64,000 bases of DNA, taken from assembly GCF_020745735.1 (NCBI RefSeq), contig NC_083444.1, positions 7,570,338 to 7,634,337 on the forward strand. The letters run 5' to 3'. Positions 9,784 to 58,460 of the stretch are shown piece by piece. Within the stretch, counting starts at the first letter, position 1, and every line of letters starts with the position of its first letter. The stretch is from Hemiscyllium ocellatum. Taxonomy: Eukaryota. Below the pieces are notes generated by a model. It was not told the DNA's origin. It ran no database searches and was given only the letters and a program-made list of their open reading frames with translations. Both the position numbers and the translations under genes were made by a program.

Positions 9784-9784
9784 N

Positions 9785-33620: not shown

Positions 33621-33907
33621 CTCCGTCCCGTCCCATCCCAGATATTTCCCCGCTGTGAGTGCCCCCTGCACGTCTGGGATCTTGCTGTGCGCCCATTACC
33701 AGGAGGGGTTTTTTTGGGCATGTGAAGGAACCGAGTGTGATGGGCAGTGGGGAGGTTGGCAGCTACGGGATGTGAACCCCGATCTACGTCCTGCATGTAG
33801 CAGCAAGGTGATGGCGCTAAATGGCCTTCCCTTGAACCACAGTCCAACGGACTGATGCATAACCCGTCTGGAAATGTCTTGTTTTCAGGCTCAGAGACGT
33901 AGACAAC

Positions 33908-33980
33908 ATGAACCACATCGCCCGCTCCTGCCTTCACCTTCTGTTAATGCTCCTCTGGATGACTAACATATTCGGAATGG
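33908..33980 (+). CDS. Ig-superfamily gene, exon 1: signal peptide MNHIARSCLHLLLMLLWMTNIFGM(G)
   Basis: ATG in acaacATG context; hydrophobic core; phase-1 donor G|gtaaga at 33981; acceptor tcttgttttcag at 33888. Confidence 0.75.
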
Positions 33981-34014
33981 GTAAGAAAGACAGGGGACTG
34001 CCATAGTGTTAAAG

Positions 34015-36530
34015 GTTTAGATGGGGAGGAATTTCTTAAGTGTGTACAAGACAACTTTCTGATTCAGTATGTGGATGTACCTACTAGAGAAGGTGCAAAA
34101 CTTGACCTACTCTTGGGAAATAAGGCAGGGCAGGTGACTGAGGTGTCAGTGGGGCAGCACTTTGGGGCCATAATTCTATTCGTTTTAAAATAGTGATGGA
34201 AAAGGGTAGACCAGATCTAAAAGTTGAAGTTCTAAATTCGAGAAAGTCCAATTTTGATGGTATTAGGCAAGAACTTTCGAAAGTTGATTGGAGGCAGATG
34301 TTCGCCGGTAAAGGGACGGCTGGAAAATGGGAAGCCTTCAGAAATGAGATGACGAGAATCCAGAGAAAGTATATTCCTGTCAGGGTGAAAGGAACGGCTG
34401 GTAGGTATAGGGAATGCTGGATGACTGAAGAAATTGAGGGTTTGGTTAAGAAAAAGAAGGAAGCATATGTCAGGTATAGACAGGGTAGATCGAGTGAATC
34501 CTGAGAAGAGTATAAAGGAAGTAGGAGTATACTTAAGAGGGAAATCAGGAGGGCAAAAAGAGATGAGATAGCTTTGGCAAATAGAATTAAGGAGGATCCA
34601 AAGGGTTTTTACAAATATATCCAGGACAAAAGGGTAACTGGGGAGAGAATACGGCCCCTCAAAGATCAGCAAGGTGGCCTTTGTGTGGAGCCGCAGAAAA
34701 TGGGGGAGATACTGAATGAATATTTTGCATCAGTATTTACTGTGGTAAAGGATATGGAAGATATAGACTGTAGGGAAATAGATGGTGACATCTTGCAAAA
34801 TGTCCAGATTACAGAGGAGGAAGTGCTGGATGTCTTGAAATGGGTAAAGGTGGCTAAATCCCCAGGACCTGATCAGGTGTACCCGAGAACTCTGTGGGAA
34901 GCCAGAGAAGTGATTGCTGGGCCTCTTGCTGAGATATTTGTATCATCGATAGTCACAGATGAGGTGCCTGAAGACTGGAGGTTGGCAAATGTGGTACCAC
35001 TTTCTGGATTAGTGGTGCTGGGAAAGCACAGCAGTTCAGGAGGCATCAGAGGAGCAGTAAAATTGACGTTTCGGGCAAAAGCCCTTCATCAGAAATATGG
35101 TACCACTGTTTAAGAAGGGCGGTAAAGACAAGCCAGGGAACTATAGACCGGTGAGCCTGACCTTGGTGGTGGGCAAGTTGTTGGAGGGAATCCCGAGGGA
35201 CAGGATGTACATGTATTTGGAAAGGCAAGGACTAATTAGGGATAGTCTACATGGCTTTGTGCGTGGGAAATCATGTCTCACAAACTTGATTGAGTTTTTT
35301 GAAGAAGTAACAAAGAGGATTGATGAGGGCAGAGCAGTAGATGTGATCTATATGGACTTCAGTAAGGCGTTCGACAAGGTTCCCCATGGGAGACTGATTA
35401 GCAAGGTTAGATCTCATGGAATAAAGGGAGAACTAGCCATTTGGATACAGAACTGGTTCAAAGGAAGAAGACAGAGGTTGGTGGTGGTGGAGGGTTGTTT
35501 TTCAGACTGGAGGCCTGTGACCAGTGGAGTGCCACAAGGATCAGTGCTGGGTCCTCTACTTTTTGTCATTTACATAAATGATTTGGATGCAAGCTTAAGA
35601 GGTACAGTTAGTAAGTTTGCAGATGACACCAAAATTGGAGGTGTAGTGGACAGCGAAGAGGGTTACCTCAGATTACAACAGGATCTGGACCAGATGGGCT
35701 AATGGGCTGAGAAGTGGCAGATGGAGTTTAATTCAGATAAATGCGAGGTGCTGCATTTTGGGAAAGCAAATTAGAGCAGGACTTATACACTTAATGGTAA
35801 GGTCCTAGGGAGTGTTGCTGAACAAAGAGACCTTGGAGTACAGGCTCTTAGCTCCTTGAAAGTGGAGTCACAGGTAGAAAGGATAATGAAGAAGGCATTT
35901 GGTATGCTTTCCTTTATTGGCCAGAGGATTGAGTACAGGGGTTGGGAGGTCATGTTGTGGCTGTACAGGACATTGGTTAGGCCACTGTTGGAATATTGCG
36001 TACAGTTCTGGTCTCCTACCTATCGGAAACATGTTGTGAAACTTGAAAGGGTTCAGGAAAGATTTACAAGTATGTTGCCAGGGTTGGAGGATTTGAGCTA
36101 TAGGAGAGGCTGAACAGGCTGTGGCTGTTTTCCCTGGAGTGTCGGAGGCTGAGGGGTGACCTTATAGAGGCAAAATTATGAGGGGCATGGATAGGTAAAT
36201 AGGCAAAGTCTTTTCCCTGGGGTGGGGGAGTCCAGAACTAGAGGGCATACGTTTAGGGTGAGAGGGGAAAGATATAAAAGAGACCTAAGGGGCAATGTTT
36301 TCACACAGAGGGTGGTACGTGTATGGAATGAGCTGCCAGAGGAAGTGATGGAGGCTGGTACAATTGCAACATTTAAAATGCATTTGGATGGGTATATGAA
36401 TAGGAAGGGTTTGGAGGGATATGGGCCGGGTGCTGGCAGGTGGGACTAGATTGGGTTGGGATATTTGGTCAGCATGGATGTGTTGGACCGAAGGCTCTGT
36501 TTCCGTGCTGTATATCTCTATGACTCTATG
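34015..36530 (+). mobile_element. 2.5-kb 5'-truncated CR1/HER1 LINE (intron 1) with Penelope-tail insertion at about 35002-35092
   Basis: Endonuclease C-terminus/linker, RT ([29 protein letters not shown]), 3' UTR and (tatgac)n tail; the insertion has a 15-bp TSD aaatgtggtaccact/aaatatggtaccact. Confidence 0.95.
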
Positions 36531-36534
36531 ACTA

Positions 36535-36712
36535 AGAGAGAGAGAGAGATAGAGACAGAGGGAGAGTGAGATAGACAGTGAGGGAGACAGACCGATGGAG
36601 AGAGATAGGAAGGGTAGAGAGAGAGAGAGAGACAGAGAGCAAGAGAGAGAGAGGAAGGAGAGGAAGAGAGAGAGCGAGACTGGGGTTGACTTGTAAGAGA
36701 GATTGAGAGGGA

Positions 36713-36747
<35 letters not shown>

Positions 36748-36895
36748 GGACAGGGAAAGAGAGAAGGGGAGAAATGGAGCAGGAGGATGGAGAAAGAGGG
36801 ACAGAATGTGGAGAGATAGATAGGGACAGAGAGAGAATGGGAGAATCAGATTGAGAGGAGGGAGAGAGAGAGATGGAGGGAGAGAGGGAGAGTCC
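36535..36895 (+). repeat. (GA)n purine-rich microsatellite
   Basis: Direct observation. Confidence 0.9.
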
Positions 36896-36919
36896 TCCTC
36901 TTTAGGGTTCACTGCAAGT

Positions 36920-37220
36920 GCTGAGGTAGCTCTACACTGTCCCCCATCAAATACTCCCAGGACAGGGACAGCATCGGCATAGATACAGAGTAAAGCTCCC
37001 ACTACACTCTCTCCCCCATCAAACACCCTCCAGGACAGGGATAGTACGGGGTTAGACACAGAGTAGAGCTCCCTCTACACTGTCCACCCATTAAACACTT
37101 CTAGGACGGGACAGCATGGGGTCAGATACAGAGTAATGCTCCCTCTACACTGTCTCCCATCAAAAACTCCCAGTACAGGGACAACATGGGGTTAGATACA
37201 GAGCAAAGCTCCCTCTACAA
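36920..37220 (+). repeat. About 60-bp minisatellite (ctacactgtcccccatcaaacactcccaggacagggacag...)
   Basis: About 5 tandem copies. Confidence 0.85.
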
Positions 37221-37564
37221 AATGGAAGCAGGGTAAATAGCAACAGCAGAAGGTCAGTTGACCCATAGAGCTTGCTCTGCCATTTGATGTGATCACAGCT
37301 GACCCTCAAACTCAATAACCTTTTCTCACTTTGCCCGTGGAACTCTTTTTAATTCCTTCAAGAAAACACAATATTTTGGCCTATCCACTTTCTATGGCAG
37401 GATATTCCACAGTCTCCACCCTGTGGGTAAAGACCTTTCTCCTCGTCTTAGTCCCACCCCTTCTCCTTTAGACTGTGATCTCTAGGCTGCCCCCGGTCAT
37501 CAGTACCAGTCTTTCTGTATTTACCCTGTCTAGTCTGGTTAGAATTTTATAGACCACTCCATCA

Positions 37565-38400
37565 GCACTAACCTGCCGACAGTGTGGTGCTCCCTCAGCA
37601 ATGATCCTCCAACACTGCTATTCCCTCAGCACTGACCCTCTGACAGTCTGGCACTCCCTGAGCACTGACCCTCTGACAGTGTGACACTCCCTCAGCACTG
37701 ACCCCCTGACAGTGCAGCACTCCCTCAGCACTGACCCCCTGACAGTGTGGCGCTCCCTCAGCACTGACCCCCTGACAGTGTGGCGCTCCCTTAGCACTGA
37801 CCCCCTGACAGTGTGGCGCTCCCTCAGCACTGATCCCCTGACATTGTGGCGCTCCCTCAGCACTGACCCTCCAAAAGTGGGGCACTCCCTCAGTACTGAC
37901 CCTCTGACAGTGCCCATTCCCTCAGCACTGACACTCTGACAGTGCGGCACTCCCTCAGCACTGACCCCCTGACAGTGTGGCGCTCCCTCAGCACTGACCC
38001 TCCGACAATGCAGCACTCCCTCAGTACTGACCCTCTGACAGTGCCCATTCCCTCAGCACTGACCCTCTGACAGTCCGCACTCCCTGAGCACTGACCCCCT
38101 GACAGTGCGGCACTCCCTCAGCACTGACCCTCTGACAGTGCCCATTCCCTCAGCACTGACACTCTGACAGTGCGGCGCCCCCTCAGCACTGACCCCCTGA
38201 CAGTGCGGCACTCCCTCAGCACTGACCCTCTGACAGTGCCCATTCCCTCAGCACTAACACTTGACAGTGCGGCACCCCCTCAGCACTGACCCCCTGACAG
38301 TGCGGCACTCCCTCAGCACACCGTCAGCACTGACCGTCAGAAAGTGCCTGCTCCCTCAGCGCTGACCCTCCGACAGTGCCCACATCCTCAACACCGACCC
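37565..38400 (+). repeat. About 31-bp minisatellite (cactccctcagcactgaccctctgacagtgcgg)
   Basis: About 25 tandem copies with no unique spacers. Confidence 0.93.
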
Positions 38401-38654
38401 TCAGAGTCTGCAATTCTTCCTCATTACAACTCCTCACACTCTTGACCCTCTGAGCGAAGAAATTCCTCCTGAGCTCAGTCTGAAGTTGGCACCCCTTTAC
38501 TCTGAGATGGTGCCCTCTGGCCCTAAACTCTCCCACCAGGGGGAAACATCCCCTCAAAGTTGACCCTTAAGGAATCTGCTACTTTTCAACGAGATTGCCT
38601 GTGACCGGGGTGATGGGGAGCGGGTGTCATAATTGGAGTCACTTTGTCCCATAG

Positions 38655-38993
38655 GACAGGCACTGTGCGAGAATGTAGTCTCCAAGGTACAGGTTACATG
38701 TGGGAACTCTGTCGTCCTGCCGTGCCAAGCTCCTGGTGTGGCGGAGCCCACCAGCATCATCTGGCAGAAAGAATCGACTGGCGGTGACTTGGTGGTGCAT
38801 GGGCAGCCAGAAGACTCCATGGGCAATCGCCAAAGTGCCTGGTACAAGAACAGGACCATGCTGCATCCCAACCATAACCTGACCCTCCAGAATGCCAAGC
38901 TGAACGACAGTGGCACCTACCTTTGTTTCGTCCGCTCGAACCCGCAGCAGAAGAGCGAGCTTTGCTCCAAGGTTTCGCTGGGCGTCATTCAAG
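38655..38993 (+). CDS. Ig-superfamily gene, exon 2: V-set Ig domain
   Basis: Acceptor ttgtcccatag, donor G|gtaagc, 339 nt, phase 1-1; B-strand LPC, C-strand IIWQK, LTLQNAKLNDSGTYLC. Confidence 0.92.
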
Positions 38994-39109
38994 GTAAGCA
39001 GCCTTTGTAGAATAGAAATGTAGAAATAGGAGTAGGAGGAGGCCATTTGGCCCCTCGAGCTGGCTCTGCCATTCAATAGGATCTTGGCTGAACGTTGAGC
39101 TCAGTTGCA

Positions 39110-39750
39110 TACAGTGTGGAAACAGGCCCTTCGGCCCAACCAGTCCACACTAACCCTCCGAAGAGAAACCCATCCAGACCCATTTCCCTCTGACTAATGC
39201 ACCTAGCACTATGAGCAATTTAGCATGGCCAATTCACCTGACCTGCACATCTTTGGGGTGTGGGAGGAAACTGGAGCACCCGGAGGAAACCCACGCAGAC
39301 AAGGGGAGAATGTGCAAACTCCACACAGACAGTCACCCAAGGCTGGAATCGAACCTGGGATGCTGATGCTGTGAGGCAGCAGTGCTAACCACTGTGCCAC
39401 CAAGCCACCTCCCTACTCTTGCCCCACTGCGGGTGGCATTGTGGCTCAGTGCTTAGCCCTGCTGCCTCACAGCGCCAGGGACCCCAATTTGATTCCAGCC
39501 TCGGGTGACTGTCTATGTGGAGTTTACACGTTCCCTTGGTATCTGCGTGGGTTTCCTCTGGGTGCTCTGGTTTCCTTCTGTCATGTGCAGTGTAGGGTGG
39601 ATTGGCCATGCTAAATTGCCCATAGTGTGCAGGTTAGGTGTATTAATCAGGGGTAAATGTAGATTAATAGGGGAGTAGGACTGGGTGGCTTATTCTTTGG
39701 AGGTTCATTGTAGACTTGTTGGGCCTAATGGCCTATTTCCACAGTGTAGG
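39110..39750. mobile_element. Two HE1 SINEs head-to-head
   Basis: Minus copy about 39110-39400, plus copy about 39430-39750. Confidence 0.85.
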
Positions 39751-40059
39751 GATACTTTTGCTCCCATCGACTTCTCCCTCTATCTTGAAAACATAATGTT
39801 TTGGCCTGAACCACATTCTGTGACAGACAATTCCACAAACTCCCCACTCTCTGGGTGAAGACATTTCTCCTCATCTCAGTCCTAACTTGTTTACCCCTCA
39901 TCTCTCAACATAACCTGTCCACCACTATCAGGACTATCCTTTCTGCCCCCTGCCTGTTGGAATTTTTAAGGCTTCTATGACACTTCCCCCCTCAATTCTT
40001 CTGAACTCCAGGGAATACAATCCTAACCCAGTCCATCCGTCCTTCTGCCAGTATAGAAT

Positions 40060-43000
40060 CCCTATGAATGTTGACAAATCCCTGGAACCTGATCAAGTGT
40101 ATCCCCTGGACATACTGGGAAGCTTGGGAAGAGATTGCGGGGCTCCTAGCAGAGATAGTTGTATCATTGACAACCATGCGTGGGGTGCTAGAGGGTGGCT
40201 AATGTGGTGCCATCATTTCAGAAATGCCAGAGAACTATAGACAGTTGAGCCTGACATCAGAGGTGGGTAATTTGTTGGAGGGCTTTGTGAGGGACAGAAT
40301 CGACATTTGGAAAGGTAAGGACTAATTAGGGATGGTCAGCATGGCTTTGTGCGTGGGAAGTAACATGATTTGAGTTTTTTTGAAGAAGTGAGCAAATTGG
40401 TGAAGGCAGAGTGGTGGAAACGGGCGTTAGAAAAGCCTTCTAGGAGAAAGTGAGGACTGCAGATGCTGGGGATCAGAGGTTAAAAATGCATTGCTGGAAA
40501 AGCGCAGCAGGTCAGGCAGCATCAAAAGAGACGGAGAATCGACGTTTCGGGCATAAGCCTGAAGAAGGGCTTATGCCCGAAACGTCGATTCTCCTTCCTC
40601 GTTGATGCTGCCTGACCTGTTGGAAAGGCCTTCGACAGGATACCACATGGTAGACTTGTTAGCAAGGATCAGTCACGGGGATCGGGGGAGGGCCAGCCAA
40701 TTGACTTGGCTTGATGGCAGGAGATAGGAGGCTTGTTTTTCAGACTGGAGGCCTGCGGTGTGTCGCAAGAATCAGTTCTGGGTCCACTGTCGTTTGCCAT
40801 TTACCGAAACAATTTCAATGAGAATATAAGAGGCATGGTTAGTCATTTTGCGGATGACACCAAAGTTGGCGGCAGAGTGGATGGTGAAGAAGTTTTTCTA
40901 AGAGTACAACGGAATCTTGATCAACTAGGGCAATGGGCTGAGAAATGGCAAATGGAGTTTACTTTCGATAAAAGGATGTATAACTACAAGTTGAGGGGTA
41001 ATAGACTTTAAGACAGATGTCAGAGGCAAGTTCTTCACTCAGAGAGTGGTAAGGGCGTGGAATGCCCTACCTGCCAATGTAGTTACCTCAGCCACATTAG
41101 AGAGATTTAAACAATCCTTGGATAAGCACATGGATGATGATGGGATAATGTAGGGGGACAAGCTGAGAATAGTTCACAGGTCGGCGCAACATGGAGGGCC
41201 GAAGGGCCTGTTCTGCGCTGTATTGTTCTATGTTCTATGTTTTAAATGTGTGGTGTTACATATTGGTAGGACAAATCTGGTCAGGACTTACACTGTTAAC
41301 GGTGGATCCCTGGGGAGTGCTATTGAACAGAGAGAGACCTGAGGTGCTGACACACAATTCCTTGAAAGTGGCATCAAAAGTAGACAGGGTGGCGAAACAG
41401 AAATTTGCCTTCATTGGTCAGAGCTTTGAGTATAGGAGTTGGGACGTCATGTTATGGCTTTACAAGGTGTTAGTGAGGTCAGATTTGGAGTACTGCATGA
41501 AATTCTGGTTGCCTGCTACAGCACCGTTGTGCTACTGAGATTTATAAAGCTCTGGTTAGGCCCCATTTGGAGTACTGTGTCCAGTTTTGGTCCCCACACC
41601 TCAGGAAGGACATACTGGCACTGAAACGTGTCCAGCGGAGATTCACACGGATGATCCCTGGAATGGTTGGTCTAACATACGAGGAACGGCTGAGAATCCT
41701 GGGATTGTATTCATTGGAGTTTAGAAGATTAAGGGGAGACTTAATAGAAACTTACAAGATAATACATGGCTTGGAAAGGGTGGACGCTCGGAAATTTTTT
41801 CCGTTAGGCGAGGAGACTAGGACCCGTGGACACAGCCTTAAAATTAGAGGGGGTCAATTCAGAACAGAAATGCGGAGACATTTCTTCAGCCAGAGAATGG
41901 TGGGCCTGTGGAATTCATTGCCGCAGAGTGCAGTGGAGGCCGGGACGCTAAATGTCTTCAAGGCAGAGATTGATAGATTCTTGATGTCTCGAGGACTTAA
42001 GAGCTACGGGGAGAATGCGGGTAAGTGGAGTTGAAATGTCCATCAGCCATGATTGAATGGCGGAGTGGACTCGATGGGCCGAATGGCCTTACTTTCACTC
42101 CTATGTCTTATGGTCTTATAGGAAGGATGTTATTAAACTGGAAAGGGTGCAAAAAAGATATGTATGGATGTTACTGAGAATGGAGGGTTTGGGCAATATG
42201 GAGAGACTGGATAGGCTGGGACTTTTTTTTTCCATGGAGCATAGAAGGCTGAGGGGGCGACCTTATAGAAGTTTATAAAATCACGGATAGGACAAATAGC
42301 CAAGATCTTTTCCCCCAGGGTGGGGAGTCCAAAACTAGAAGGCAGTGGCATAGGGTGAGAGGGGAAAGATTTAAAAGGGACCTGACAGACAAAAATCAAT
42401 GAGGAGAAAGTGAGGACTGCAGATGCTGGAGATCAGAGCCGAAAATGTGTTGCTGAAAAAGCGCAGCAGGTCAGGCAGCATCCAGGGAACAGGAGATTCG
42501 ACCTTTTGGGCATAAGCCCTTCTTCAGGAATTCCTGAAGAAGGGCTTATGCCCGAAACATCAAATCTCCTGTTCCCTGGATGCTGCCTGACCTGCTGTGC
42601 TTTTTCAGCAACACATTTTCAGGCAAAGATCATTCACAGGGGACTGGGGAGAGCTAGCCAATTCAATACTGACTTGGCTTGATGGTAGGAGACAGGAAGC
42701 TTGTTTTTCAGACTGGAGGCCTGTGACCAGCAGTGTGTTGCAAGAATCAGCACTGTCGTTTGCCATTTATCGAAACAATCATAAATTGTTTAGACAAATT
42801 TATCTAAATTTATAGTGGGTGGTGTGTGCATGGAATGAGCTGCCAGAGGAAATGCTGGAGTCTGGTACAATTACAATATTTAAAAGGCATTTGAATGGAT
42901 ACATGAGTAGGAAAGTTTTTAGCGGGGTGTAGGCCGAACACAGGCAAATGGGACTAGTTCAGTTTGGTGAACCAGGTCAGCATGGACAAGTTGGGCTGAA

Positions 43001-44330: not shown

Positions 44331-44585
44331 AATTTATGTATGATTCTTTGACAGGAGGTAAGGAACACAATGGGAGGAATATCTTTGGGATTCTCCCTCC
44401 CAGAGGCTCCATTGGCAGATTGATCTGAATGAATGGGGGGACGTGGGAGCCCAGGATTGACCCATGTCAGGAATAAAAATGGCGGAGGGAGATGGATAGT
44501 CCTCCCATCTATTCTCTTCTGCTTCCCACACGTGGATGTATTGAGTCCCTCCTGCTGTGACGCTGTTGTTCTCCTGTCTTTGCAG

Positions 44586-44927
44586 AAGCCGATGTTTTCT
44601 GGGCAGTGCACTCCGAGGTCAGAGCGAAACATGGGGAAGAGCTGAGTTTTCACTGGGGCTTGAACCTGCACTGTATCACCACTGAGGATCTGGGAGTGAA
44701 CTGCGGGATCCTCAACTCGACCGAGCAGCGCCGCTTCGAGCTGCGGAGAGTGGGGGCAGCCGGAGGAGCCCGCTCCGAGCTCCCCGTCCTGATCCTGGAA
44801 GAGGCCGGCGGGTTGGCCAGCTTCCGCGTGCCGGGCTTCTCCTTCGGGAGGCCAGGGGGTGCCATCGAGTGTTGCCTGGACAACGGCAGGAAGGAGGTGT
44901 GCGCCCGCGCCAAGGTCAACATCATGG
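44586..44927 (+). CDS. Ig-superfamily gene, exon 3: atypical Ig-like domain
   Basis: Acceptor ctcctgtctttgcag, donor G|gtacgt, 342 nt, phase 1-1, open frame, GC/CpG-rich coding-like composition; ASFRV..G.IEC and EVCARAKVNIMG resemble E, F and G strands. Confidence 0.8.
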
Positions 44928-45489
44928 GTACGTTTGATCGGAGCGCCTGTGCGATCAGCCCTGTCCCCTCCCCACCCCCACCCCCAACTGCGCCATCATT
45001 TGCCAACAGAGGCCAATTGGCCCGTCAACTCCCAGGCTGTCCCCCTACTGAGCAACCTAGTCAGTCCCCTTCCCCCCACCGTGTCCCTTCCCTTCTCAAA
45101 CTCCATCACGTTCACTTCCATAGTCCTCCAACCAGCCTCACTTCCAGGCCATGATTTCTCGCTGATTGAAAGTTCTTCTCTGTATCTCCATTGCAGCCCT
45201 TCCTCTGAATTCAGTAATCAGCATTTTATTTTCTCTGCTATACCTTTGCAAGGTCGTAATCTTGGCCAGGCCTCAATCAAATCTCCCCTTGGCCCCTTTT
45301 TCCCTGAGGAGACCAACCCTAGTGTCTCTGATGTATGATCAGAATCCCCAATTTCCTGAACTGATCCAGGTAAATCTCCTCCACCCATGCGGCTTTGAAG
45401 GATCTTCCAGTCCACCTTGAGTGAACTGGGGGGCAATACATTCTGGAGCACCCCAGCCCCCACCCCCTCCCTCTCTCCAGCCATTCAAC

Positions 45490-48120
45490 ACTTCTCCACT
45501 TAGAGTCATAGATTCATATAGTTGTACAGCATGGAAACAGAGCCTTCGGTCCAACCCATCCATGCCGACCAGATATCCCAACCCAATCTAAGTCCACCTG
45601 CCAGCACCTGGCCCATATTCCTCCAAACCCTTCCTATTCATATACCCATCCAAATGACTCTTAAATGTTGCAATTGTACCAGCCTCCACCACTTCCTATG
45701 GCAGCTCATGCCATACCCGTACCACCCTTTGTGTGAAAAAGTTGCCCCGTAGGTCTCTTACATCTTTCCCCTCTCACCCTAAGCCTATGCCCTCTAGTTC
45801 TGGACTCCCCAACCCCAGGGAAAAGACTTTGCCTGTTTACCCGATCCATGCCCCTCATAATTTTGTAAATCTCTATAAAGTCTCCCCTCAGCCTCCAGGG
45901 AAAGCAGCCCCAGCCTGTTCAGCCTTATTAGTTCATGTCTAAATGCAACTAGCTCTGGACGATATCCAGGTTTGGGTGGACAAGTGGCAGAGAACATTCA
46001 CGTCACACAAATGCCAGGTTGTGACCATCCCCAACAAGAGAGATTCGAACCATCAGCCCATGCCATCAATGGTGTTGCCATCAATGAAACCTCCCCAATA
46101 TCAACATCCTGGGGGCTACCGTTGCCCAGAAACTGCACACAGTGGCTACAAAGGAGAAAGTGAGGGCTGCAGATCAGAGTCGAGAGCATGGCGCTGGAAG
46201 AGCACAGCAGGTCAGGCAGCATCCCAGGAGCAGGAGAATCGATGATTCAGGATTCCTGATGAAGGACTTCTGCCCGAAACGTTGATTCTCCTGTTCCTTG
46301 ATGCTGTCTGACCTGCTGTGGCTTTCCAGCACCACACTCTCCACAGCGGCTACAAATGCAAGTTAGGATACTGCCGCGAGTAGGTCACCTCCTGACTCCC
46401 TGAAGCCTGTCCACCATCGACAAGGCACAACTCAGGAGGGTGAGGGGGAATACTCCCCACTTGCCCCGGATGGTGGGCAGCTCCAACAACACTCAAGAAG
46501 CTCGACACCATCCAGGGACAAAGCAGCCCCCACTCGATTGGCATCACATCCACAAGCATCCCCTCCCTCCACCATCAACGCTCAGTCGCAGCAGTGTGTA
46601 CCATCTACAAGATGCGCTGCAGAAACTCACCAAAGATCCTCAGACAGCACCTTCCAAACCTATGGTCACTTCCATCGAGAAGGACAGGAGCAGCAGATAC
46701 TTGGGAACACCACCCCCTGCAAGTTCCCCTCTGAGCCCCTCACCATCCCAACTTATCATAGATAAGGTCCATCAAAAAGGCCCTTTGGCTCATCGTCTGC
46801 ACTGACAATAACCGCCACTAAAAGTGCACTCATCCCAATTTCCTGCACTTGTCCCATACCTTTGAATGTTGTGATATTTGAAGAAAGTACTCTTCCAAAT
46901 ATTTTTTCGTTACCTTCCTAGGCAATGCATTCCGGATTCCCACCACCCACTGAGTGAAAAGGTGCTTTCCCCAAATCCCCTCTGAATCTCCTGACCCTTA
47001 CCTTAAAAATGCTCATGATTGGCTCCTCAACCAAGGGGAACTGCTGCTCTCTATTCACTCTGTCCATACCCCTCATAATCTTACACACCTCAATCATGTC
47101 TCCCCCTCAGTTTTCTCTGCTCTAGAGAAAGCAACCCAAGCCTATCTAGTCTCTCCTTGTAGCTCAATGTCTCCATCCCAGGCAAAATCCTGGTGAACCT
47201 CCTCTGTAAGCCGTCTAGTGCTATCCCATCCTTTCTGTCCTGAGGTGACCAGAACTGCACACAGTCCTCCAACTGTGGCCTAACCAACACTCTGTATATT
47301 ACCTCCTTACTCCTTATACTCTATGCCACAACTGAGCATAGCAAATGTCCCATACGTCTTCTTAACTATCTGACTCACGTGCTCTGCTGTCTTCAGGGAT
47401 CTGTGAATAATTACCCCAAGAGCCCTCTATTCCGACCCACTATCCTACCCTTCATTAAATACTCCATCATCTTGCTTCTTTGTCCAAAGTGCACCACCAC
47501 GCACTTAGAGTCATAGTCATAGAGATGTACAGCCTCTTTGGTCCAACCCGTCCATGCCAACCAGATATCCCAACACAATCTAGTCCCACCTGCCAGCACC
47601 CGGCCCATATTCTTCCAAACCTTTCCTATTCATATACCCATCCAAATGCCTCTTAAATGTTGCAATTGTATCAGCCTCCACCACTTCCTCTGGCAGCTCA
47701 TTCCACACACATACCATCCTCTGCCTGAAAAAGTTGCCTCTTAGGTCTTTTTTATATCTTTCCCCTCTCACCCTAAACCTATGCCCTCTAGTTCTGGACT
47801 CCCCGATCCCAGGGAAAAGACTTTGCCTATTTATCCCATCATGCCCCTCATACTTTTGTAAACCTCTATAAGGTCACCCCTCAGCCTCCGACGCTCCAGG
47901 GAAAACAGCCCCAGCCTTTTCAGCCTCTCCGTGTAGCTCAAATTCTCTAACCCTGGCAACATTATCAGTCTTAAATACCATCTGCCACCGGTCTGCCCAT
48001 TTGACTGACCCATCCATGTCTTCCTCTAATCTACAACCATCTTCTTTGCTTTTCACCATTTTGCCAATCTTGGTGCCATCTGTAGATTTGCTTAATAGTC
48101 TCCCCACATTTTCATCCATA
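45490..48120 (-). mobile_element. CR1 fragments, L2/RTE-like fragments and a Penelope fold-back (about 46155-46345) (intron 3)
   Basis: CR1 3' ends in reverse orientation; cctgatgaaggacttctgcccgaaacgtt core at about 46255. Confidence 0.75.
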
Positions 48121-48854
48121 TCATTTATGTCTATATATCGGCCAAAATCCTGAAACTCCCTCCCTAACGGATGCTGCGTCTGGTGTGTGGGTTTTATGAC
48201 TTTAGAGTTTCACTTGGCCAGTGTACCCAGCATCCCTTGCTGTTTGGCCCTGTGTTAGGGACCCCTACACCACACGGGACTGCAGCGGTTCAAGAAGGCA
48301 GATCACCCCCGCCTTCTCAAGGGGAAATTAGGGACTGGGCGACAAAACCTGGAATTGAAAATCTAATGATAATCATTACTGACTGTTGGGAAAAAAAACA
48401 CACAAAGTGGGGCAGAGGGGTCTGGAACTCTCTTCAACAAACAACAGTGGATCAGTTGTTAATTTTAAATCTGAGATAGATAAAGTTTTGTTTAACAAAA
48501 GGTGTGAAGGCATCTGGGCCAAAGGCAGGTACAGGGAGTAAGGCTATGACCAGTGAGTGGCGGAACAGGCTCAAGGGGCTGAATGGCCTATTCCTGTTCC
48601 GTTTGCCTGCAACCTGTGTGTACATAAAAAAGTAAGAAGAGTGGGGGAGTTCAGAGACACGGTGGCAATGACTGGGGGATTAGCAGAGAGAATGAGCAGA
48701 TGTTATCGTAATGTTAACCATTCCCCCATTGAAAGCACTGGCACCATATGCCATTGAGGTGGACCAATGATTCAGGGAGGGTTGATAAAGATGTGCAGGT
48801 TAGGGTGAATTGGCCACGCTAAATTGTTCAGGGATGTGTGGGTTAGGTGCATTA

Positions 48855-51800
48855 GGCGAAAGTGAGGACTGCGGTTGCTGGAGATTAGAGCCAAGATTAG
48901 AGTGGTGCTGGAAAAGCACAGCAGGTCAGGCAGCATCTGAGGAGCAGGTAAAATCAACGTTTCAGGCAGGTGTCCTTCATCAGAAAGTTGAATTAGATTA
49001 GATTACTTTTTTTTTAAGGTTAGATTACTTACAGTGTGGATGCAGGCCCTTCGGCCCAACAAGTCCACACTGACCCGCTGAAGAGCAACCCACCCAGATC
49101 CATTGCGCTATATTTACCCCTTCACCTAACCTGCACATTTTTTGGACGGTGGGAGGAAGCCGGAGCACCCGAAGGGAGCTCACAGAGGCACGGAGAGAAT
49201 GTGCAAACTCCACACAGACAGTTGCCTGAGGTGGGAATTGAACCCAGGTCCCCACTGCTGTGAGGTAGCAGTGCTAACCTCTGTGCCACCGTGCTGCCCA
49301 TAGTCAGGGGTAAATGGCTAATGCAGTAATGAGGTAGGGGAGTGGTTCTGGGAGGGTTACTGTTCGGAGGGTTAGTGTGGGCTGTTGGGCTGAATGGCCT
49401 GTTTCAACACTGAGGTGTTTTATGATTCTATGAACACACTGTGTCTGTGTGAGCCTGACTCTGCCCACTCATTCTTTTTTTTTGTCTTTAAAAGCTCCAA
49501 AGCTATTTACTTTGCTTTCTATGGTGCAGACATCTCATCACCAGATTTACAGCAGCCCTGTTCAGGAGGAAAATGACAGGACCAATCCTTCCTCAAGACA
49601 CTTCTTGTCATTCAGCTTTTTGAGAAAGTAACCGAAAAGATAGATGAGGGCAGAGCGGTAGATATTGGTCACTTGGACTTCAGTAAAGCCTTCAACACGC
49701 TTCTGCACCGTCAACCAATTCGAAAGCTAGATCACATGGGATTCAGGATGTGTTTGACTATTGGATACAGAATTGGCTCGATAATAAGAGACAGAGGATA
49801 GTGGTGGAGGATTGTGTTCCAGTCTGGAGACCTGGTACCAATAGTGTGCCACAGAGATTGGTGCTGGGTCCATCTCTGTTTGTCATTTAAATTGAATAGA
49901 ATTGAACCCTAATGGAGTGAAAACAGGCCAATTGGCCTAACAAGTCCACACCGACCCACCGAAGGGTAGCCCACCCTAACCCATTCCACTACCCTATTAC
50001 TCTACATTTACATCTGACTAATGCGCCTAACCTACACATCCCTGAACACTACAGGCAACTTAGCACGGCCTATTCACCTAACCTGCACATCTTTGGACTG
50101 TGGGAGGAAACTGGAGCGCCTGAAGGAAACGCATGCAGACATAGAGAGAATGTGCAAACTCCACACACAGACAGTCGCCCGAGACTGGAATCGAACCTGG
50201 GTCCTTGATGCTGTGAGGCAGCAGTGCTAACTAACCACTGAGCCACCCTGCCGCCCTACGTGATGCCTCACCTACATTGTGTGCGACTGCAATGTGACAT
50301 CCCAACTCCTACACTCAAAAGTCAGAGTAACAAAGGCAAGCGTGCTAAACATCTTCTTAAACCACCCTGTCTACATGTGAGGCAACATCAAAGAATCATG
50401 TACCTAAACCCCTAGGTCCCTCTCTGTTCTACAACACTACCCAGGGCCCTACTTTTAATCGTACAAGCCCTCCCCTCGTTTGTTTTACCAAAATGCAACA
50501 CCTTGCATTTATCCAAATTAAACTCCATCTGCCACTCTGCCCATTGACACAAACGATCAAGATCTCTTTGTAATCTTAAATAATCTTCCTCCTTGTTCAG
50601 CAATGTTGGTGTCACTCACAAAGTTACTAACCGTGCCTTCTATTTTGGTCAAATCAAGGACAGGGCTTGTACAATTCAAACGAGGACCCTGGCTAGTGTT
50701 GTAGAATAGAGAGATCAAGGGGTTCAGGTACATCATTCTTTGATGTTTGCATCATATGTAGACAGGGTGATTCAGAAGGCGTTTAGCACACTTGCCTTCA
50801 TTACTCAGAATTTTGAGTGTGGGAGGTGGGATGTTATGTTGCAGTTGTACAAGATGCTGGTGAGGCGTCTTCTGAAGCCTCAGTGTTGTAGGAAGGATAT
50901 TGGAGAAGGTTCAGAAGAGATTTACCAGGATGTCGCTGGTTATAAGGAGAGGCTAGACAGGCTGGGATTTTGTTTTTCACTGGAACATAGGAGATGACCT
51001 CACAGAGATTTATAAAATCAGAAGGGGTATAGGTAAGGTGAATGCCAGGTATATTTTCCTTAGGCTGGAGAATTTCAAGACGAGGGTGAAAGATTTAAAA
51101 AGGACATGGGGGAAAACGTTTTACACACAGATTGGTTCGTGTGTGGAGTGAACTTCTTGAGGAAGTGGGGGATGCGGGTACAACGTTTAAAAGGCACTTG
51201 GATAGGTTTGTGAACGGGAAAGGTTTGGAGGGGTATGGGCCAGGAGCAGGCAGGTGGGGTCGAGTTTAGTTTGGGGTTTTGGTCTGCACGGACTGGTTGG
51301 GCCGAAGGGTCTGTTTCCGTGCTGTGGGACTGTATGACACAGTCCCCACTGTGGGGGGACAGGAACAGAGATGAAGAGAAATGTGTTCATCCAGGCGGTG
51401 AGGATTAGAATAGCACAGCACAGCACAGAATCAGGCCCTTCAGCCCATGATATTGTCCCAAACATGACGCCAAATTAAACTAATCCCTTCTGCCTGCTCC
51501 TGGCTTTTATCCCACCAAATATTTCCCTTTCATCTACTGATTTTATTACAGCATAGATAACTTACAGTGTGGAAACAGGCCCTTCGGCCCAACAAGTCCA
51601 CATCGACCCGCCGAAGCGCAACCCACCCATACCCCTACATTTACCCCCTACCTAACACTACGGGCAATTTAGCATGGCCAATTCACCTGACCCGCACATC
51701 TTTGGGCTGTGGGAGGAAACCCACGCAGACACGGGGAGAACGTGCAAACTCCACACAGTCAGTCGACTGAGGTGGGAATTGAACCCGGGTCTCTGGCGCT

Positions 51801-51900
51801 GTGAGGTAGCAGTGCTAACCACTGTGCCACCGTGCCGCCCATCTACTGATCCAAACATCTTTTAAACATTGTAACTGTACTCGCTCCTCTGGAAGTTCAT
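48855..51900. mobile_element. SINE (about 49015-49300, 49930-50255, 51560-51840) and CR1 fragment cluster
   Basis: HE1 consensus copies and CR1 motifs. Confidence 0.8.
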
Positions 51901-52081
51901 TCCACACACAAACGTGGTCCAGATCCCTCTATTCCTCACATATTCATGTGCTGATCTAAAAGCCCCTGAGATGCCCCTATTGTATCTGCCTCTATCACCA
52001 CCCCTGGCAGCACATTCCAGACTCCTACCACTCCAGAATGTTCTCTGCCTGCTCTGATCTCTTGCGTTCTTATACCGACAG

Positions 52082-52170
52082 GGTCCACAAACAACACTGG
52101 CTCAACACACCGGGGACGCCATCAACTCTTAACCTTGTTGCTGCTGACCTTCGTCATGGTTGTTTTGTGA
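52082..52170 (+). CDS. Ig-superfamily gene, terminal exon: (G)STNNTGSTHRGRHQLLTLLLLTFVMVVL* (GPI-signal-like)
   Basis: Acceptor cttgcgttcttataccgacag, phase 1, stop TGA at 52168-52170, hydrophobic C-terminus, followed by AATAAA at 52394. Confidence 0.72.
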
Positions 52171-52393
52171 AAATAAGGGGCTTTTTCAGCAGAACTGGTG
52201 ATAGCTGAGCACAGATGAGGATGCAAATCTGCTTCCCCAACTGTCAGAGAGAGAGGAAGCAGCCTCTGCCTTCTCTTACAAGTCAGATGTTTACAGCGCA
52301 GGAAGACGTCAGTCAATCCTTCCACAAAGACACTCAAGTCAGTTTCCAGTTCTGGGCCCGTTCGGAGGAGGTTGATCATCACCATGTTGTCGA

Positions 52394-52399
52394 AATAAA
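52394..52399 (+). terminator. Polyadenylation signal of the Ig gene
   Basis: AATAAA about 225 nt after the stop codon, in non-repeat sequence. Confidence 0.55.
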
Positions 52400-55300
52400 G
52401 GTTTCAGGTTTTAACTGATTCTGACACGGCTCCGTGCCACACATGCACTGCATCTCGGGAGTCCTGAAGACGGGTCAATACCAGAAACGTTGACTTCCCC
52501 ACCTCCTGATGCTGCCTGGCTTGCTGTGTTCTTCCAGCCTCCTGCCTGTCCACCTTGGATCCCAGCATCTACACGGTTTTTTTTTCTGTCTCGGGGAAAG
52601 CAGAAGGTTGGCTGGAGGAACTCCAGCTGAAGTCTAGGAGCAACACCAAGAGAAGGAACAGATACCGCAGATCTTGGAAGTTTCATAGAGTCCCTATAGT
52701 GTAGAAACAGGCCCTTCAGCCCAACAAGTCCATACTGACCCTCTGAAGAGAATCCCACCCAGACCCGTTGCCCTGTTACTCTACATTTACCCCTGACTAA
52801 TGCACCTAACCCACACATCCCTGGACACTATGGGCACTTTAGCATAGCCAATCCACTCTAATGTGTGGGTATATGAATAGAAGGGATATGGGCTGGGTGG
52901 TGGCAGGTGGGACTAGATTGGGTTGGGATATCTGGTCAGCATGGACAAGTTGGACTGAAGGGTCTGTTTCTGTGTTGTACATCTCTGTGACTATAACCTA
53001 CACATTCATAGACACTAATGCATAGCCAATCCACCACAACCTGCACACTATAGCAGAGTCAATTCACCCTAACCTGCACATCTTTGGATTGTGAGAGGAA
53101 ACTGGAGCACCCAGAGGAAATCCACGCAGACACGGGGAGAATGTGAAACTCCACAGACAAATACCCCGAGGTTGGAATCGAACCCAGGTCCCTGACGCTG
53201 TGAGGCAACAGTGCTAACCACAGAGCCACCATGCCGTCCCACGCTGGGCAGATTGTCCTTGCCCTCAGGGTCTTCTTGCCTCTCGCGACATTTTCTGCCA
53301 TTTCAGCTACTCCTGCTTCAGAGTCGCAGGTTCGAACCCCGCTCTGTGGCAGAGCTTGGGAGTGGTGGGGAATGGGGGTGTGAGAAGGTAAACTTGATTG
53401 ATTGATTGTCACGCGTACCAAAGTACAGTGACAAGAATTGTTTACAAGCAGACCACAGTGAGCAAGGGATGCACAGATGAAATACACTCAGACAGAGGCA
53501 CACAGGGCATTCCCTGGGCAAGATCAACTTGGCTCAGAGGAACATGGGAAAATGTCAAGGATGGACAAGGGAATTAACGCCCCCCCCGCCAATAGCCATC
53601 TTTCTCCAGAGGGAGGGAGGGAGAGCGCAAGAGTTGACGATCTGGCCATTGTCACATTACTCCTCTGTGGGATCTTGCTGTGCTGATGACGACGGTTCCC
53701 AGTGCCGCGGCAGTGCCAAGACTTCGGAGCTGGTTCCTGACTCTTTCTGGAGCATAGGGCCCGGAATTAAAACCCAACCTGATGGCGACTGCGCCGTCGA
53801 TGTCCGTAAAAGTCGCCCCCCCACCCCACCTTCTGGCCCTCCCATTCAGTAGGGAAATCCACCCTCCCTCACCTGCTCGGGACCTACACGTGACTCCAGA
53901 CCTGAAGGCGTTAACACGTAACTGCCCTCTAAGATGGTCCACTCGGTTCCAAGGGGCTGCGGTTGGTGATAGGGGTCTTGACAGCAATCACATGGAATGG
54001 TTAGCAAAACAAAGTTCCGGAAGGGCGCTATACCAATTCAAAGTCTTTTCTCCTCTCTATTTCCTTTCTCTTCCCCTCAGGAAGTCTCTGGATTGTGTCC
54101 ACTGAGTTTTAATTCTCAGCTACACTAGGAACTGATGATAATCAGAGGGTTCAAGGGTTAAGCTTTCAGGAGGGACATTAACAAGTAAGAACAGGGGGAG
54201 GCCATTCACCCCCTCGAATCTGTTCTGCCTTGAAAACAATCAGGATTGATCTTATCTCGGCCTCAGTTCCACTCTGCTGCCTGCTCTCCTTTAACCAGTT
54301 GCTAATTAAAAAATCTGTCTCCTCCTTACATTTACCCAGCTTCCATAGCACTCTGGGGCGAGTGAATTGCACAGATTCCCCACCCTTTGAGAGAAGTAAT
54401 TCCTCCCCATCTCTGTTTTAAATCTGCCATCCCCTTGTCCCAAAACTGTGACCTCTCGGTCCAGATGGCCCTACACGGGGAATCACCCTCTCTACATCAA
54501 TTTTGTCAATCTCCTTTCGCATCTTGTAGACCTCAGTTATAACTTCTCTCCTTCTAAACACCAGACAATACACACCACTCCGTCTCTGTTCGTAAGACAT
54601 TCTTTGTCTCTGGAATCAATCTGGTGAATCTGCCCTGAGTTGCCTCCAATGTGTGGACTGTTAATGACTAGTCCTCCCAACCTTGCTGGATAGACCCAGC
54701 AATGTGAGAGCAAGCCATTTTTGGACCATCTAGTCCACACCGACCCTGTGAAGGGTATCATGTTCAAGTCGTTTTGCCTCATCTGTGGCTTTTTCATTTA
54801 CCAGTTATTTTCCTTTGCAACCAGCAGTCACATGTTAACAGTGGTTGAGAAGTTAACTGTTTGCAAATGGAACAATTCTACACGAGACTGCTTCCCACTC
54901 TCTAGTCGGTGTTAATCAGAACTCACACCTTGCGTGTGTTAGAAAAACCCGTTGTGAGGTTTACTGAAAGTTGCATCTGACCAGACCTTTGGTAACAGTA
55001 ACTTTAGTTGTGGGTGTGAAAGCAGCCCACTGCTGGCAGAATCTGCATGATCTCCCTCTGCAAGGACTGTGCTGTTCAAGAAAGAGGCCATTCCACCATC
55101 TGAATCCCTCCAGTATGGGAACAGGCCATTCGGCCCAACAAGTCCACGTCGACCTTCTGAACAGTAACCCAGCCAGACCCATTCCCCTACCCTAACTAAT
55201 GCGCCCATATATCCCTGGACACTATGGGCAATCTCCCATGGTCAATCCACCCTAACCTGCACATCTTTGGAGTGTGGGAGGAAACCGGAGTACCCGGAGA

Positions 55301-57580: not shown

Positions 57581-58393
57581 TAGACAATAGTCAAGACCCT
57601 GTACAATTGCAGCAAGACATATCTGCTTCTGTATTCGTACCTACCACGGCCAACATCCCATTTGCCTCCTCCGCTGCCTGCTGTATTTGCAACGTTCACT
57701 TTCCGCGACTGGTGTATCGAGACACCCAGGTCTCGTCACTCGTCTCCCCTTCCTGATCTATCCCCATTCAGGTAATAATCTGCCTTCTCCTATTTTTGCC
57801 ACCAAAGTGGATAACCTCACGGGTGATCCACATTGCATGGCGTCTGCTGTGCTTTTGCCGGCTCACTCCATTTGTCCGAATCGCGCTGAGCGCCCTCTGC
57901 GTCCTCCTTCATAGTTCCGCCTCCAGAGCAACGTACTGTCATCCAAGTATGGAATCTCACTCACTAACAACACCGTGGAAGTGTCCCCTACATTGTATAG
58001 AGTGTACCAGCTCACCCCCACCTACTTGGGGGGTGTGGGGGGAAGGTGAGTGCAATTGGGGGCGAGGTATAAGACCAAGAAAAATTTGAGCTGGACGGGC
58101 TGTTTTGTGAATGCATTCTCACACTTTTGCAAGCCAGCTGCGTGACTGCCAACTCACACTCTATGTGTGCTGTCAGATGCAAAGTTCATGAGATGCAATG
58201 CCCTGGCCTTACTGAACACAATTACATAAGCGCAGTTATTGCGAAATCTCACGTTTAATGTCTAGGCAACACTCAGTTGAGGGAACCTACCCACATCCTG
58301 TCCAACCTCAGTCGCTGGGCGGATGCAGCGCAGAGTTTAAAAAGCTGCAGAGTTGCAATAAACAGAGGCAGATTACCCTCCAACTCAGCCGAA

Positions 58394-58460
58394 ATGGGAT
58401 TTGAAGCCGCCTTAAAGACTTTCACCGCCCTGCTCGTCTTTCTGGCCTTGGATCTTCAAG
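58394..58460 (+). CDS. Signal-peptide exon of a further gene: MGFEAALKTFTALLVFLALDLQ(G)
   Basis: gaaATGG start context, hydrophobic core, phase-1 donor G|gtaaga at 58461; unique-sequence context. Confidence 0.6.

Follow-up and report, generated by a model that had tools for sequence, protein, structure and literature searches.

The window is a 64,000-nucleotide stretch of the genome of the epaulette shark Hemiscyllium ocellatum, and it contains an IgSF gene on the plus strand. Four spliced coding exons encode an open reading frame (ORF) of 280 amino acids, and every junction is a GT-AG junction in phase 1. Coding exon 1 lies at 33889-33980, with a coding part at 33908-33980 (73 nt) that begins with the ATG at 33908-33910 and supplies signal peptide residues 1-24 and the first base of codon 25. 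It is followed by a B7-type V-set Ig exon (38655-38993, 339 nt; residues 25-137), a domain 2 exon (44586-44927, 342 nt; residues 138-251), and a tail exon (52082-52170, 89 nt including the TGA at 52168-52170; residues 252-280). The donors of the coding exons are GTAAGA, GTAAGC, and GTACGT, and all acceptors consist of a pyrimidine tract followed by AG. The 3′ UTR extends over 52171-52420 (end approximate) with an AATAAA at 52394-52399, and sequence conservation with Stegostoma and Rhincodon runs on to 52446-52451. The product contains five N-X-S/T sequons at N90, N99, N108, N181, and N255.

The spliced product is 100% identical to XP_060710745.1 (P0014), the uncharacterized protein LOC132835316 of Hemiscyllium ocellatum, so an independent gene model places its junctions at precisely the same sites. 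The locus is a real epaulette-shark gene that is already present in RefSeq as an uncharacterised protein, and a literature search for these LOC and XP identifiers found no mention of them. The sequence-only reading, which had described the four in-phase exons, the 280-residue ORF, the five sequons, and the poly(A) signal, was accurate on each of these points. As an indirect sign of transcription, every sampled word of exon 2 (1.00) occurs in sequencing runs guessed from their small size to be RNA. Of a 1-kb stretch that surrounds exon 4, and of which 0.33 is exon, these runs contain just 0.32 and 0.47, and DNA-sized runs contain 0.57-0.72.

An additional 5′ exon, which is non-coding in Hemiscyllium ocellatum, lies on the plus strand at 12600-12660 (start approximate; donor 12660/12661) and joins the acceptor 33888/33889 in a gene model based on conservation. 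Its donor, CCCTCGTG/GTAAGTGCT, is invariant among the window, Rhincodon (L002), and Stegostoma (L001). In L002, the Rhincodon counterpart of the exon lies at 10001-10063, where the XP_048476061 model places it, and this species also keeps the acceptor of the start-codon exon and the surroundings of its ATG. Once the 5′ exon is counted, the gene as predicted from these alignments has at least five exons and covers about 40 kb. The locus had been proposed as a complete four-exon gene starting at 33889; the four coding exons stand as described, with this conserved 5′ exon to be added to them. Position 33889 is a genuine exon boundary, the first base after the conserved acceptor ttgttttcag/G, and the start codon is at 33908.

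Two features of the whale-shark gene models were rejected. The 26-residue N-terminal extension of the RefSeq model is not a conserved feature: Stegostoma has no ATG at this point, and in the window the upstream ATG at 12609 runs into a TGA after 7 codons. A candidate 3′ exon at approximately 45197-45366, which corresponds to the C-terminus of the ab initio model P0002, does not occur in Stegostoma, and in the other species its frame is broken by a 13-nt indel and a TAG. In the intron directly upstream of the V exon is a 33-bp satellite of about 23 copies (37555-38405), which Stegostoma and Rhincodon carry at the corresponding place in the intron.

The V domain and the adjacent receptor gene

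Domain 1 matches the Pfam V-set at 4.4e-11, in agreement with its earlier designation as an IgV domain. A profile of the orthologues finds its best solved match in CD276 (B7-H3), with the 4Ig form at 5e-22, both of its V domains being matched, and the 2Ig forms at 1.3e-10 and 3.7e-10. The best 60 matches to the PDB also include BTN3A (BTN3A1-3, 2e-8), VTCN1 (B7-H4, 2.3e-6), and PD-1. The CD276 alignment spans the A′/B to F/G strands, which is most of the V domain, and covers the pattern IWQ...LVH...Y-NRT-L-PD...L-L...D-G-Y-C-V. Five V-domain cysteines, C29, C40, C48, C115, and C128, are invariant in the orthologues. By profile, domain 1 is a B7/butyrophilin-type V domain, and it supplies a family where the sequence-only reading could name none. 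The gene also shares with the B7/butyrophilin family its plan of one domain per exon and its phase 1 junctions.

CD276 is the most conserved B7 protein across jawed vertebrates (PMC13262535), whereas the shark gene is known from carpet sharks only. In addition, the shark V domain differs from that of CD276 in its extra cysteines C29, C40, and C128, no C1/C2-set domain can be recognised in domain 2, and the shark gene lacks a transmembrane or cytoplasmic exon.

A second gene begins 6 kb downstream on the same strand. Its first exon (58394-58460, 67 nt) encodes a signal peptide, ends in phase 1 at a GTAAGA donor, and belongs to a CD28H-like single-V receptor gene. This exon aligns with Stegostoma L001 at 39842-40090 and, at 36971 in Rhincodon L002, with the start of a V-set gene of 266 aa. 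The head-to-tail linkage of the putative ligand and receptor genes is kept in three species, which represent three carpet-shark genera. The V region of the whale-shark receptor contains YYCHLQIERPIP...GNGTVLIV, which resembles YxC-polar-xxx-E-I-P-(P), the CDR3 motif of CD28H-type receptors (PMC11599192). In this motif the neighbouring gene is like TMIGD2 (CD28H), and if the two neighbours are partners, HHLA2 (B7-H7) and TMIGD2 would be a comparable case of a B7-type ligand for a CD28H-type receptor. HHLA2 has a V-C-V ectodomain and a transmembrane segment, and the human HHLA2 and TMIGD2 genes are unlinked.

The B7-like protein may bind this neighbouring receptor. In a model of the whale-shark V-V complex (ligand P0012:52-171 and receptor L002:41050-41400), the ipSAE is 0.81 versus 0.20 for the best of the controls, which were unrelated proteins and included no other Ig domain. 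The partner pLDDT is 86 and the runs share at least 96% of contacts; in calibration, 51 of 78 solved complexes and 2 of 108 mismatched pairs attained the mark applied to complex scores. The modelled interface involves the C, C′, F, and FG strands of the ligand and the IPIK FG loop of the receptor. Nine of its 15 residues are identical between epaulette and whale shark, as compared with about 58% for the V domain overall, so conservation in the predicted interface does not exceed that of the remaining V domain. The complex may also pass through memory of solved V-V pairs, because such pairs resemble many solved complexes, including antibody Fv and PD-1/PD-L1, and the test cannot say which member of a family binds.

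These properties of the complex test and the unexceptional conservation of the interface lend some weight to a different partner, either another CD28-family receptor or an unrelated one, or to homophilic adhesion. The linkage would then be merely part of a local IgSF cluster, and the adjacency of the two genes may simply reflect tandem duplication. Against this stand the retention of the head-to-tail arrangement in three species and a complex score that is both high and reproducible, with contacts made through the CDR3-like P-x-P loop of the receptor. A partner other than the neighbour is considered somewhat unlikely.

Domain 2 and the C-terminal tail

Domain 2 contains five invariant cysteines and has no match in Pfam, in the PDB (by single sequence or profile), or in the ESM Atlas. 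Among 1.84 billion representative proteins, only its carpet-shark orthologues were recovered. Alignment with the gene's own V domain by hhalign returned nothing, and domain 2 is therefore not a recognisable V duplicate. Weak phmmer matches (P0004-P0011), mostly to bacterial Big_13 repeat proteins, were rejected as chance matches that share only a short FEC-LDGG-like motif. The AlphaFold model of the domain is all-β and of low confidence (pLDDT 48), and that of the full-length protein is also of low confidence (pLDDT 32). With the pLDDT-48 model as query, Foldseek returns nearly all Ig-type domains at weak E-values of 4e-3 to 2e-2, and VIA-align returns mostly Ig-like β-sandwiches, again weakly, with a best Z of 6.7. 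The model suggests that domain 2 is an orphan disulphide-rich β domain, probably Ig-like. The Ig-like label given earlier finds no counterpart in the Pfam and PDB sequence searches and draws its support from the resemblance of this low-confidence model to Ig-type domains.

Only two stretches of the protein are hydrophobic: the signal peptide and the 14-15 C-terminal residues, after which nothing follows. The signal peptide has its hydrophobic core at residues 4-25, with the small residues G23 and G25 at -3/-1 by inspection, and it can be retained from the earlier description. The tail exon encodes, in order, GSTNNTGST, the polar spacer HRGRHQ, 14 hydrophobic residues (L267-L280), and the stop. 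Judged by rule, this is the arrangement of a GPI signal: the small residues G258-S259-T260 (D-S-A in Stegostoma and Rhincodon) are followed by the spacer HRG(R/C)HQ and a hydrophobic end. The GPI-like tail is kept in all orthologues, which upholds the C-terminal pattern noted in the single sequence; it fits a GPI-attachment signal and suggests that the protein is GPI-anchored. The sequence-only reading had also raised the use of a transmembrane or cytoplasmic exon instead of the exon at 52082, and a search of the window against the orthologues for a conserved in-phase hydrophobic exon downstream of exon 3 found none.

CD48, the GPI form of CD58, Thy-1, and CD160 similarly combine a signal peptide and one or two Ig domains with a hydrophobic C-terminal signal that ends at the stop, but they have no specific sequence similarity to the shark protein. 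The V domains of the CD2/SLAM family are further set apart from the shark V domain, which has the canonical disulphide that they lack. VTCN1 resembles the shark protein in its B7 V domain. Its ectodomain has two domains, its cytoplasmic part is nearly absent, and early reports described it as GPI-linked. Domain 2 of the shark protein is unrelated to it by sequence, and the comparison offers no evidence of orthology.

VTCN1 is now usually drawn as a type I membrane protein with a minimal cytoplasmic tail, and the shark protein could likewise be held in the membrane by its C-terminal hydrophobic stretch, with a cytoplasmic tail of 0-2 residues and no GPI anchor. The whale-shark protein carries two extra polar residues (RN) beyond the hydrophobic stretch and ends in ...VVLRN. 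The dN of the tail exon (0.14-0.16) is lower than that of the ectodomain (0.23-0.26), and a cleaved signal would not need such conservation. However, the ORF ends with a hydrophobic run of just 14 residues, preceded by H-R-G-R-H-Q and small ω-like residues, rather than with a transmembrane segment and cytoplasmic tail. A hydrophobic run of fourteen residues is what a GPI signal typically has, whereas a helix that spans the plasma membrane is usually longer. The type I arrangement is thought quite unlikely, and GPI anchorage is preferred. As an observation in its own right, the RN end of the whale-shark protein resembles a very short cytoplasmic tail.

Orthologues, selection, and the comparison with CD83

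The same exon plan is found in Chiloscyllium, Stegostoma, and Rhincodon, and the architecture and tail recur in four further species. In both Stegostoma (L001) and Rhincodon (L002) the coding sequence is likewise divided into four exons, of 73, 354, 348, and 89-95 nt, all in phase 1. Protein database searches, including a search with the orthologue profile, found no relatives outside the carpet sharks (Orectolobiformes). A word-indexed search with the V region gave only 17 candidates and no new relatives, and the ESM Atlas returned only generic IgSF clusters for the whole protein. As far as the databases show, the gene is restricted to carpet sharks.

The ORF is intact in five species, and the orthologues conserve every one of the ten ectodomain cysteines along with three sequons and the phases of the splice junctions. 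In comparisons with Stegostoma and Rhincodon the dN/dS ratio is 0.48-0.52, which lies significantly below 1 (p about 1e-5), and that of the domain 2 exon is 0.56-0.60 (p about 0.02). Between Stegostoma and Rhincodon the ratio is 0.77, which is not significantly below 1. With a ratio of about 0.5, the gene is fast-evolving and yet constrained by purifying selection. The overall ratio, the higher value between the latter two species, and the lack of any relative found beyond one shark order could also describe a lineage-specific gene that is drifting towards loss with no maintained function. This reading is very improbable: the deeper comparison departs significantly from 1, and reading frame, cysteines, sequons, and splice phases have all been preserved.

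CD83, which the sequence-only reading had named as the nearest look-alike, is a protein with a single V domain and a transmembrane segment, followed by about 40 residues of cytoplasmic tail. Although CD83 (5mix) aligns with the single shark sequence across the entire V domain at 3.1e-5, has a similar V-domain start, and shares an A-strand cysteine eight residues before the B-strand cysteine, homology to CD83 can be dismissed as extremely improbable, since it falls outside the best 60 profile matches while CD276, BTN3A, PD-1, and VTCN1 fall inside, and the shark protein has two extracellular domains and no tail.

Proposed role of the protein

The reading preferred here, with a probability of roughly 0.6, is that this is a functional, fast-evolving carpet-shark IgSF gene for a GPI-anchored B7-type ligand, with a probably Ig-like second domain and the neighbouring receptor as its likely partner. 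Its role as an immune ligand, which the sequence-only reading had also proposed, is one that we infer. The precursor would lose its signal peptide, probably by cleavage after G25, leaving in order the B7-type V domain, the disulphide-rich β domain, and the C-terminal GPI signal. The likely ω site lies around G258-S259-T260 and would be followed by the HRGRHQ spacer and the 14 hydrophobic residues. Once processed, the protein would sit on the outer leaflet as a glycosylated ligand held by its lipid anchor, and it would itself lack a signalling tail. The V domain would turn its GFCC′ face towards a receptor carried by another cell, and the most likely candidate is the CD28H-like single-V receptor whose gene begins 6 kb downstream.

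A bolder and distinctly tentative extension, which is considered unlikely as it stands, is that the two neighbours form a linked checkpoint pair that is private to carpet sharks, consisting of a GPI-anchored B7-like ligand, whose membrane-proximal domain would belong to no known family, and the CD28H-like receptor 6 kb away that it would engage. The database already models the gene, and its product, an IgSF surface glycoprotein, is of an ordinary kind, so the finding is not a surprising one. The locus also shows a B7-type V domain on an apparent GPI anchor, together with a second domain that sequence searches assign to no family.

Sharks and basal bony fishes have proved to possess many more CD28-family receptors than mammals do, and the ligands of the members of this family have been left open (PMC11599192). 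The locus provides a concrete candidate ligand-receptor gene pair that is present in three carpet-shark genera and passes an in-silico complex test. If the proposed pairing is true, it would provide a ligand for one orphan CD28H-like receptor of early jawed vertebrates, and it would be an example of a ligand and its receptor inherited as one block.

Gene structure and distribution

LOC132835316 has four coding exons on the forward strand: exon 1 at 33908-33980 (start codon 33908-33910), the V-domain exon at 38655-38993, the domain 2 exon at 44586-44927, and the tail exon at 52082-52170. Every donor carries GT, every acceptor is pyrimidine-rich and ends in AG, and the phase is 1 throughout. Splicing these exons by script yields a 280-codon ORF followed by TGA, which reproduces the product of the sequence-only reading and matches XP_060710745.1 in 280/280 residues; an independent annotation thus uses the same junctions. 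The product contains eleven cysteines, and the proposed five N-X-S/T sequons (N90, N99, N108, N181, and N255) and poly(A) signal (AATAAA, 52394-52399, +) were both located.

The proposal that the gene is complete in four exons did not hold. Position 33889, which the sequence-only reading gave as the start, directly follows a good acceptor (ttgttttcag, then G) 19 nt 5' of the ATG, and the extra upstream exon of the whale-shark (Rhincodon typus) model has a conserved homologue at about 12600-12660 (+). The donor of this exon (…CCCTCGTG followed by GTAAGTGCT) is invariant in the window, Rhincodon, and Stegostoma, whose background identity is about 70%. Because the upstream ATG of the epaulette shark runs into a stop after seven codons and the Stegostoma exon has no ATG, the exon reads as a 5' UTR exon, non-coding in the epaulette shark. 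This brings the gene to at least five exons across about 40 kb, with a first intron of 21 kb. The 26-residue extension before the whale-shark signal peptide (XP_048476061.1 residues 1-26; 10001-10063 of the Rhincodon locus, L002) is unconserved and probably reflects an annotation artefact.

About 23 copies of a 33-bp satellite (37555-38405) lie in the intron before the V exon. The array is found at the matching position of that intron in Stegostoma and Rhincodon and is therefore older than their divergence. The window also contains a run of 128 N at 9657-9784, which is an assembly gap or a masked stretch.

An exhaustive HMMER search of 1.84 billion representative proteins with the domain 2 exon returned three real relatives, whose clusters gave XP_060710745.1 and its orthologues. 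The orthologues are XP_072447377.1 of Chiloscyllium punctatum (280 aa, 90% identical), a partial model of C. plagiosum (201 aa), XP_059498545.1 of Stegostoma tigrinum (287 aa, about 60% identical), and XP_048476061.1 of Rhincodon typus (315 aa). All are named uncharacterised, all come from Orectolobiformes, and a literature search found no paper mentioning them. The rebuilt loci each contain four phase-1 coding exons (73/354/348/89 nt in Stegostoma and 73/354/348/95 nt in Rhincodon) and are collinear with the window. No relative in other sharks, rays, or chimaeras emerged from the exhaustive domain 2 search or from word-indexed searches with one orthologue or a profile. This supports, but does not prove, restriction to Orectolobiformes, as protein searches would miss unannotated genes. 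LOC132835316 is an uncharacterised gene for which a model is already in the databases.

Indirect evidence for expression comes from two small same-organism sequencing runs that the tool guessed to be RNA. These runs contain every sampled exon 2 word (1.00). For the 1 kb surrounding exon 4, of which exon plus 3' UTR amounts to 0.33, their fractions are only 0.32 and 0.47, compared with 0.57-0.72 in DNA-sized runs. The fractions match what exon-only (RNA) data would give, which is not proof.

The two ectodomain folds

Domain 1 is assigned by Pfam to the V-set (4.4e-11). Its single-sequence PDB matches are generic (CD276, Robo, contactin, and CEACAM), and CD83, to which the sequence-only reading likened the N-terminus, matches across the whole domain at 3.1e-5. 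A profile built from the four orthologous V domains and run against PDB gave a sharper ranking: CD276 at 1.3e-10 and 3.7e-10, its 4Ig form at 5e-22 with both V domains matched, BTN3A1-3 at about 2e-8 to 3e-7, PD-1 at 3.7e-7, and VTCN1 at 2.3e-6. While these proteins rank, CD83 and CD80 are absent among the best 60 matches. A CD80 likeness of IIWQKE and YKNRT is likewise unsupported by the ranking.

The CD276 alignment spans IWQ...LVH...Y-NRT-L-PD...(A/N)-L-L...D-G-Y-C-V. Six V-domain residues are deleted in the Hemiscylliidae Hemiscyllium and Chiloscyllium (region 38868-38880, residues 96-100) and kept by Stegostoma and Rhincodon, where they align with the CD276 stretch D-L-L-A-Q-G-N. By its profile matches, domain 1 classes as a B7/butyrophilin-type V domain, and its resemblance to CD83 is weaker. 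A family can thus be named for a protein previously said to match none.

Domain 2 is likely Ig-like. It is 113 aa long and encoded by a phase 1-1 exon, with a B-strand-like L-x-L-x-C and an F-strand-like I-E-C-C-L, all of which fit such a fold. Pfam (E up to 10) assigned no family to six orthologous domain 2 sequences, a domain 2 profile matched no PDB chain, the ESM Atlas gave nothing usable, and comparison with the gene's own V domain revealed no likeness. Single-sequence PDB matches were LAR Ig domains only, at E of about 1, and weak matches to giant proteins were discounted as mostly bacterial Big_13 repeats sharing a common short motif.

The AlphaFold model from the six-sequence alignment is all-β with eight strands at low confidence (pLDDT 48, pTM 0.44). 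Its top 50 Foldseek matches are almost entirely Ig-type domains, including FGFR, RPTPσ/LAR, RAGE, antibody V, and ICOS-L, at weak E values of 4e-3 to 2e-2. The best VIA-align match is the CD84 V domain, with a Z of 6.7 that the tool calls unremarkable, and the remainder are also mostly Ig-like β-sandwiches.

Tail and selective constraint

The hydrophobic stretches of the product are limited to the signal peptide and the last 14-15 residues, with which the protein ends. In GPI signals, small residues at ω and ω+2 are followed by a spacer of 5-10 residues and then by 10-20 hydrophobic residues, with no cytoplasmic part. A plasma-membrane helix is usually longer than 14 residues. Here the hydrophobic run is preceded by the small residues G258-S259-T260 (D-S-A at the aligned positions in Stegostoma and Rhincodon) and then H-R-G-R-H-Q. 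The proposed pattern of small residues, polar spacer, and terminal hydrophobic run is kept in the orthologues and fits a predicted GPI signal. Two residues (RN) beyond the hydrophobic run in the whale-shark protein call for caution.

The alternative, a transmembrane exon used in place of the tail, is countered by a search in which no conserved exon of this kind was found. A single in-phase candidate, an ORF in the intron that follows exon 3 (45197-45366, +), does contain a hydrophobic stretch, and an ab initio whale-shark model (EukProt g24934.t1) takes its C-terminus from the downstream part of this ORF. The ORF shows no in-frame conservation and is absent from Stegostoma.

Nei-Gojobori estimates of dN/dS between the epaulette shark and Stegostoma and Rhincodon are 0.48-0.52 for the whole gene, 0.40-0.45 for the V domain, 0.56-0.60 for domain 2, and 0.44-0.62 for the tail exon. 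The synonymous excess is significant overall (p ~1e-5) and for domain 2 alone (p ~0.02). The ratio between Stegostoma and Rhincodon, 0.77, is not significantly below 1. All ten mature-ectodomain cysteines, sequons N90, N181, and N255, and the tail are kept in the orthologues. By these comparisons the gene is constrained yet fast-evolving, as are many immune surface proteins.

A linked CD28H-like receptor

In Rhincodon, a V-set gene of 266 aa begins 5.4 kb downstream of the orthologue on the same strand. The first exon of that gene corresponds by alignment to 58326-58572 of the window, where a signal-peptide exon (MGFEAALKTFTALLVFLALDLQ) lies at 58394-58460 (+; ATG at 58394, 67 nt, phase 1, donor GTAAGA after 58460). 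The same exon follows the Stegostoma gene, and linkage is thus conserved in three genera. About 55 nt before this exon there is a TTTAAAAAG box, and the remainder of the receptor gene is beyond the window end.

The whale-shark receptor V exon (L002:41050-41400) reads YYCHLQIERPIP...GNGTVLIV. This is close to the CDR3 motif Y-x-C-polar-xxx-E-I-P-(P) and the J-like G-x-G that CD28H-type receptors carry (Quiniou et al., PMC11599192). Searched against PDB by plain sequence, this V matches TCR Vα and light-chain V domains best, making it a VJ-type V.

Since a B7-type V beside a CD28H-type V is more than adjacency, the two whale-shark V domains were modelled together. The predicted complex reached an ipSAE of 0.81 in 3/3 runs, where the best control, drawn from unrelated proteins and not other Ig V domains, reached 0.20. 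Partner pLDDT was 86, and at least 96% of contacts were common to the runs. In calibration, the tool's mark was reached by 51/78 solved complexes and 2/108 mismatched pairs and, for eukaryotes, by 39/65 solved pairs without a like complex among older structures and 2/126 unrelated pairs. Predicted ligand contacts fall on strands C, C', F, and FG (epaulette-shark I60, Q62, G67-V71, F116, R118, and Q122-S125), and receptor contacts on strands C, C', and F and the I-P-I-K FG loop. This is the face-to-face mode known from B7 and CD28-family pairs.

Solved structures include many V-V pairs, so the high score may reflect complexes that the model has memorised. When the tool itself was tested, close relatives of a true partner reached the mark as well, and the predicted interface is no better conserved than the remainder of the V domain. 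The prediction supports, but does not show, binding of the ligand V to the neighbouring receptor V.

Of the earlier interpretation, the architecture and GPI-like tail stand; CD83 as the nearest resemblance and an unnameable family do not, and the second of the two proposed Ig domains is supported by weak structural evidence. LOC132835316 most likely encodes a B7-like carpet-shark ligand with a lipid anchor, for which the linked CD28H-like receptor is a possible partner.
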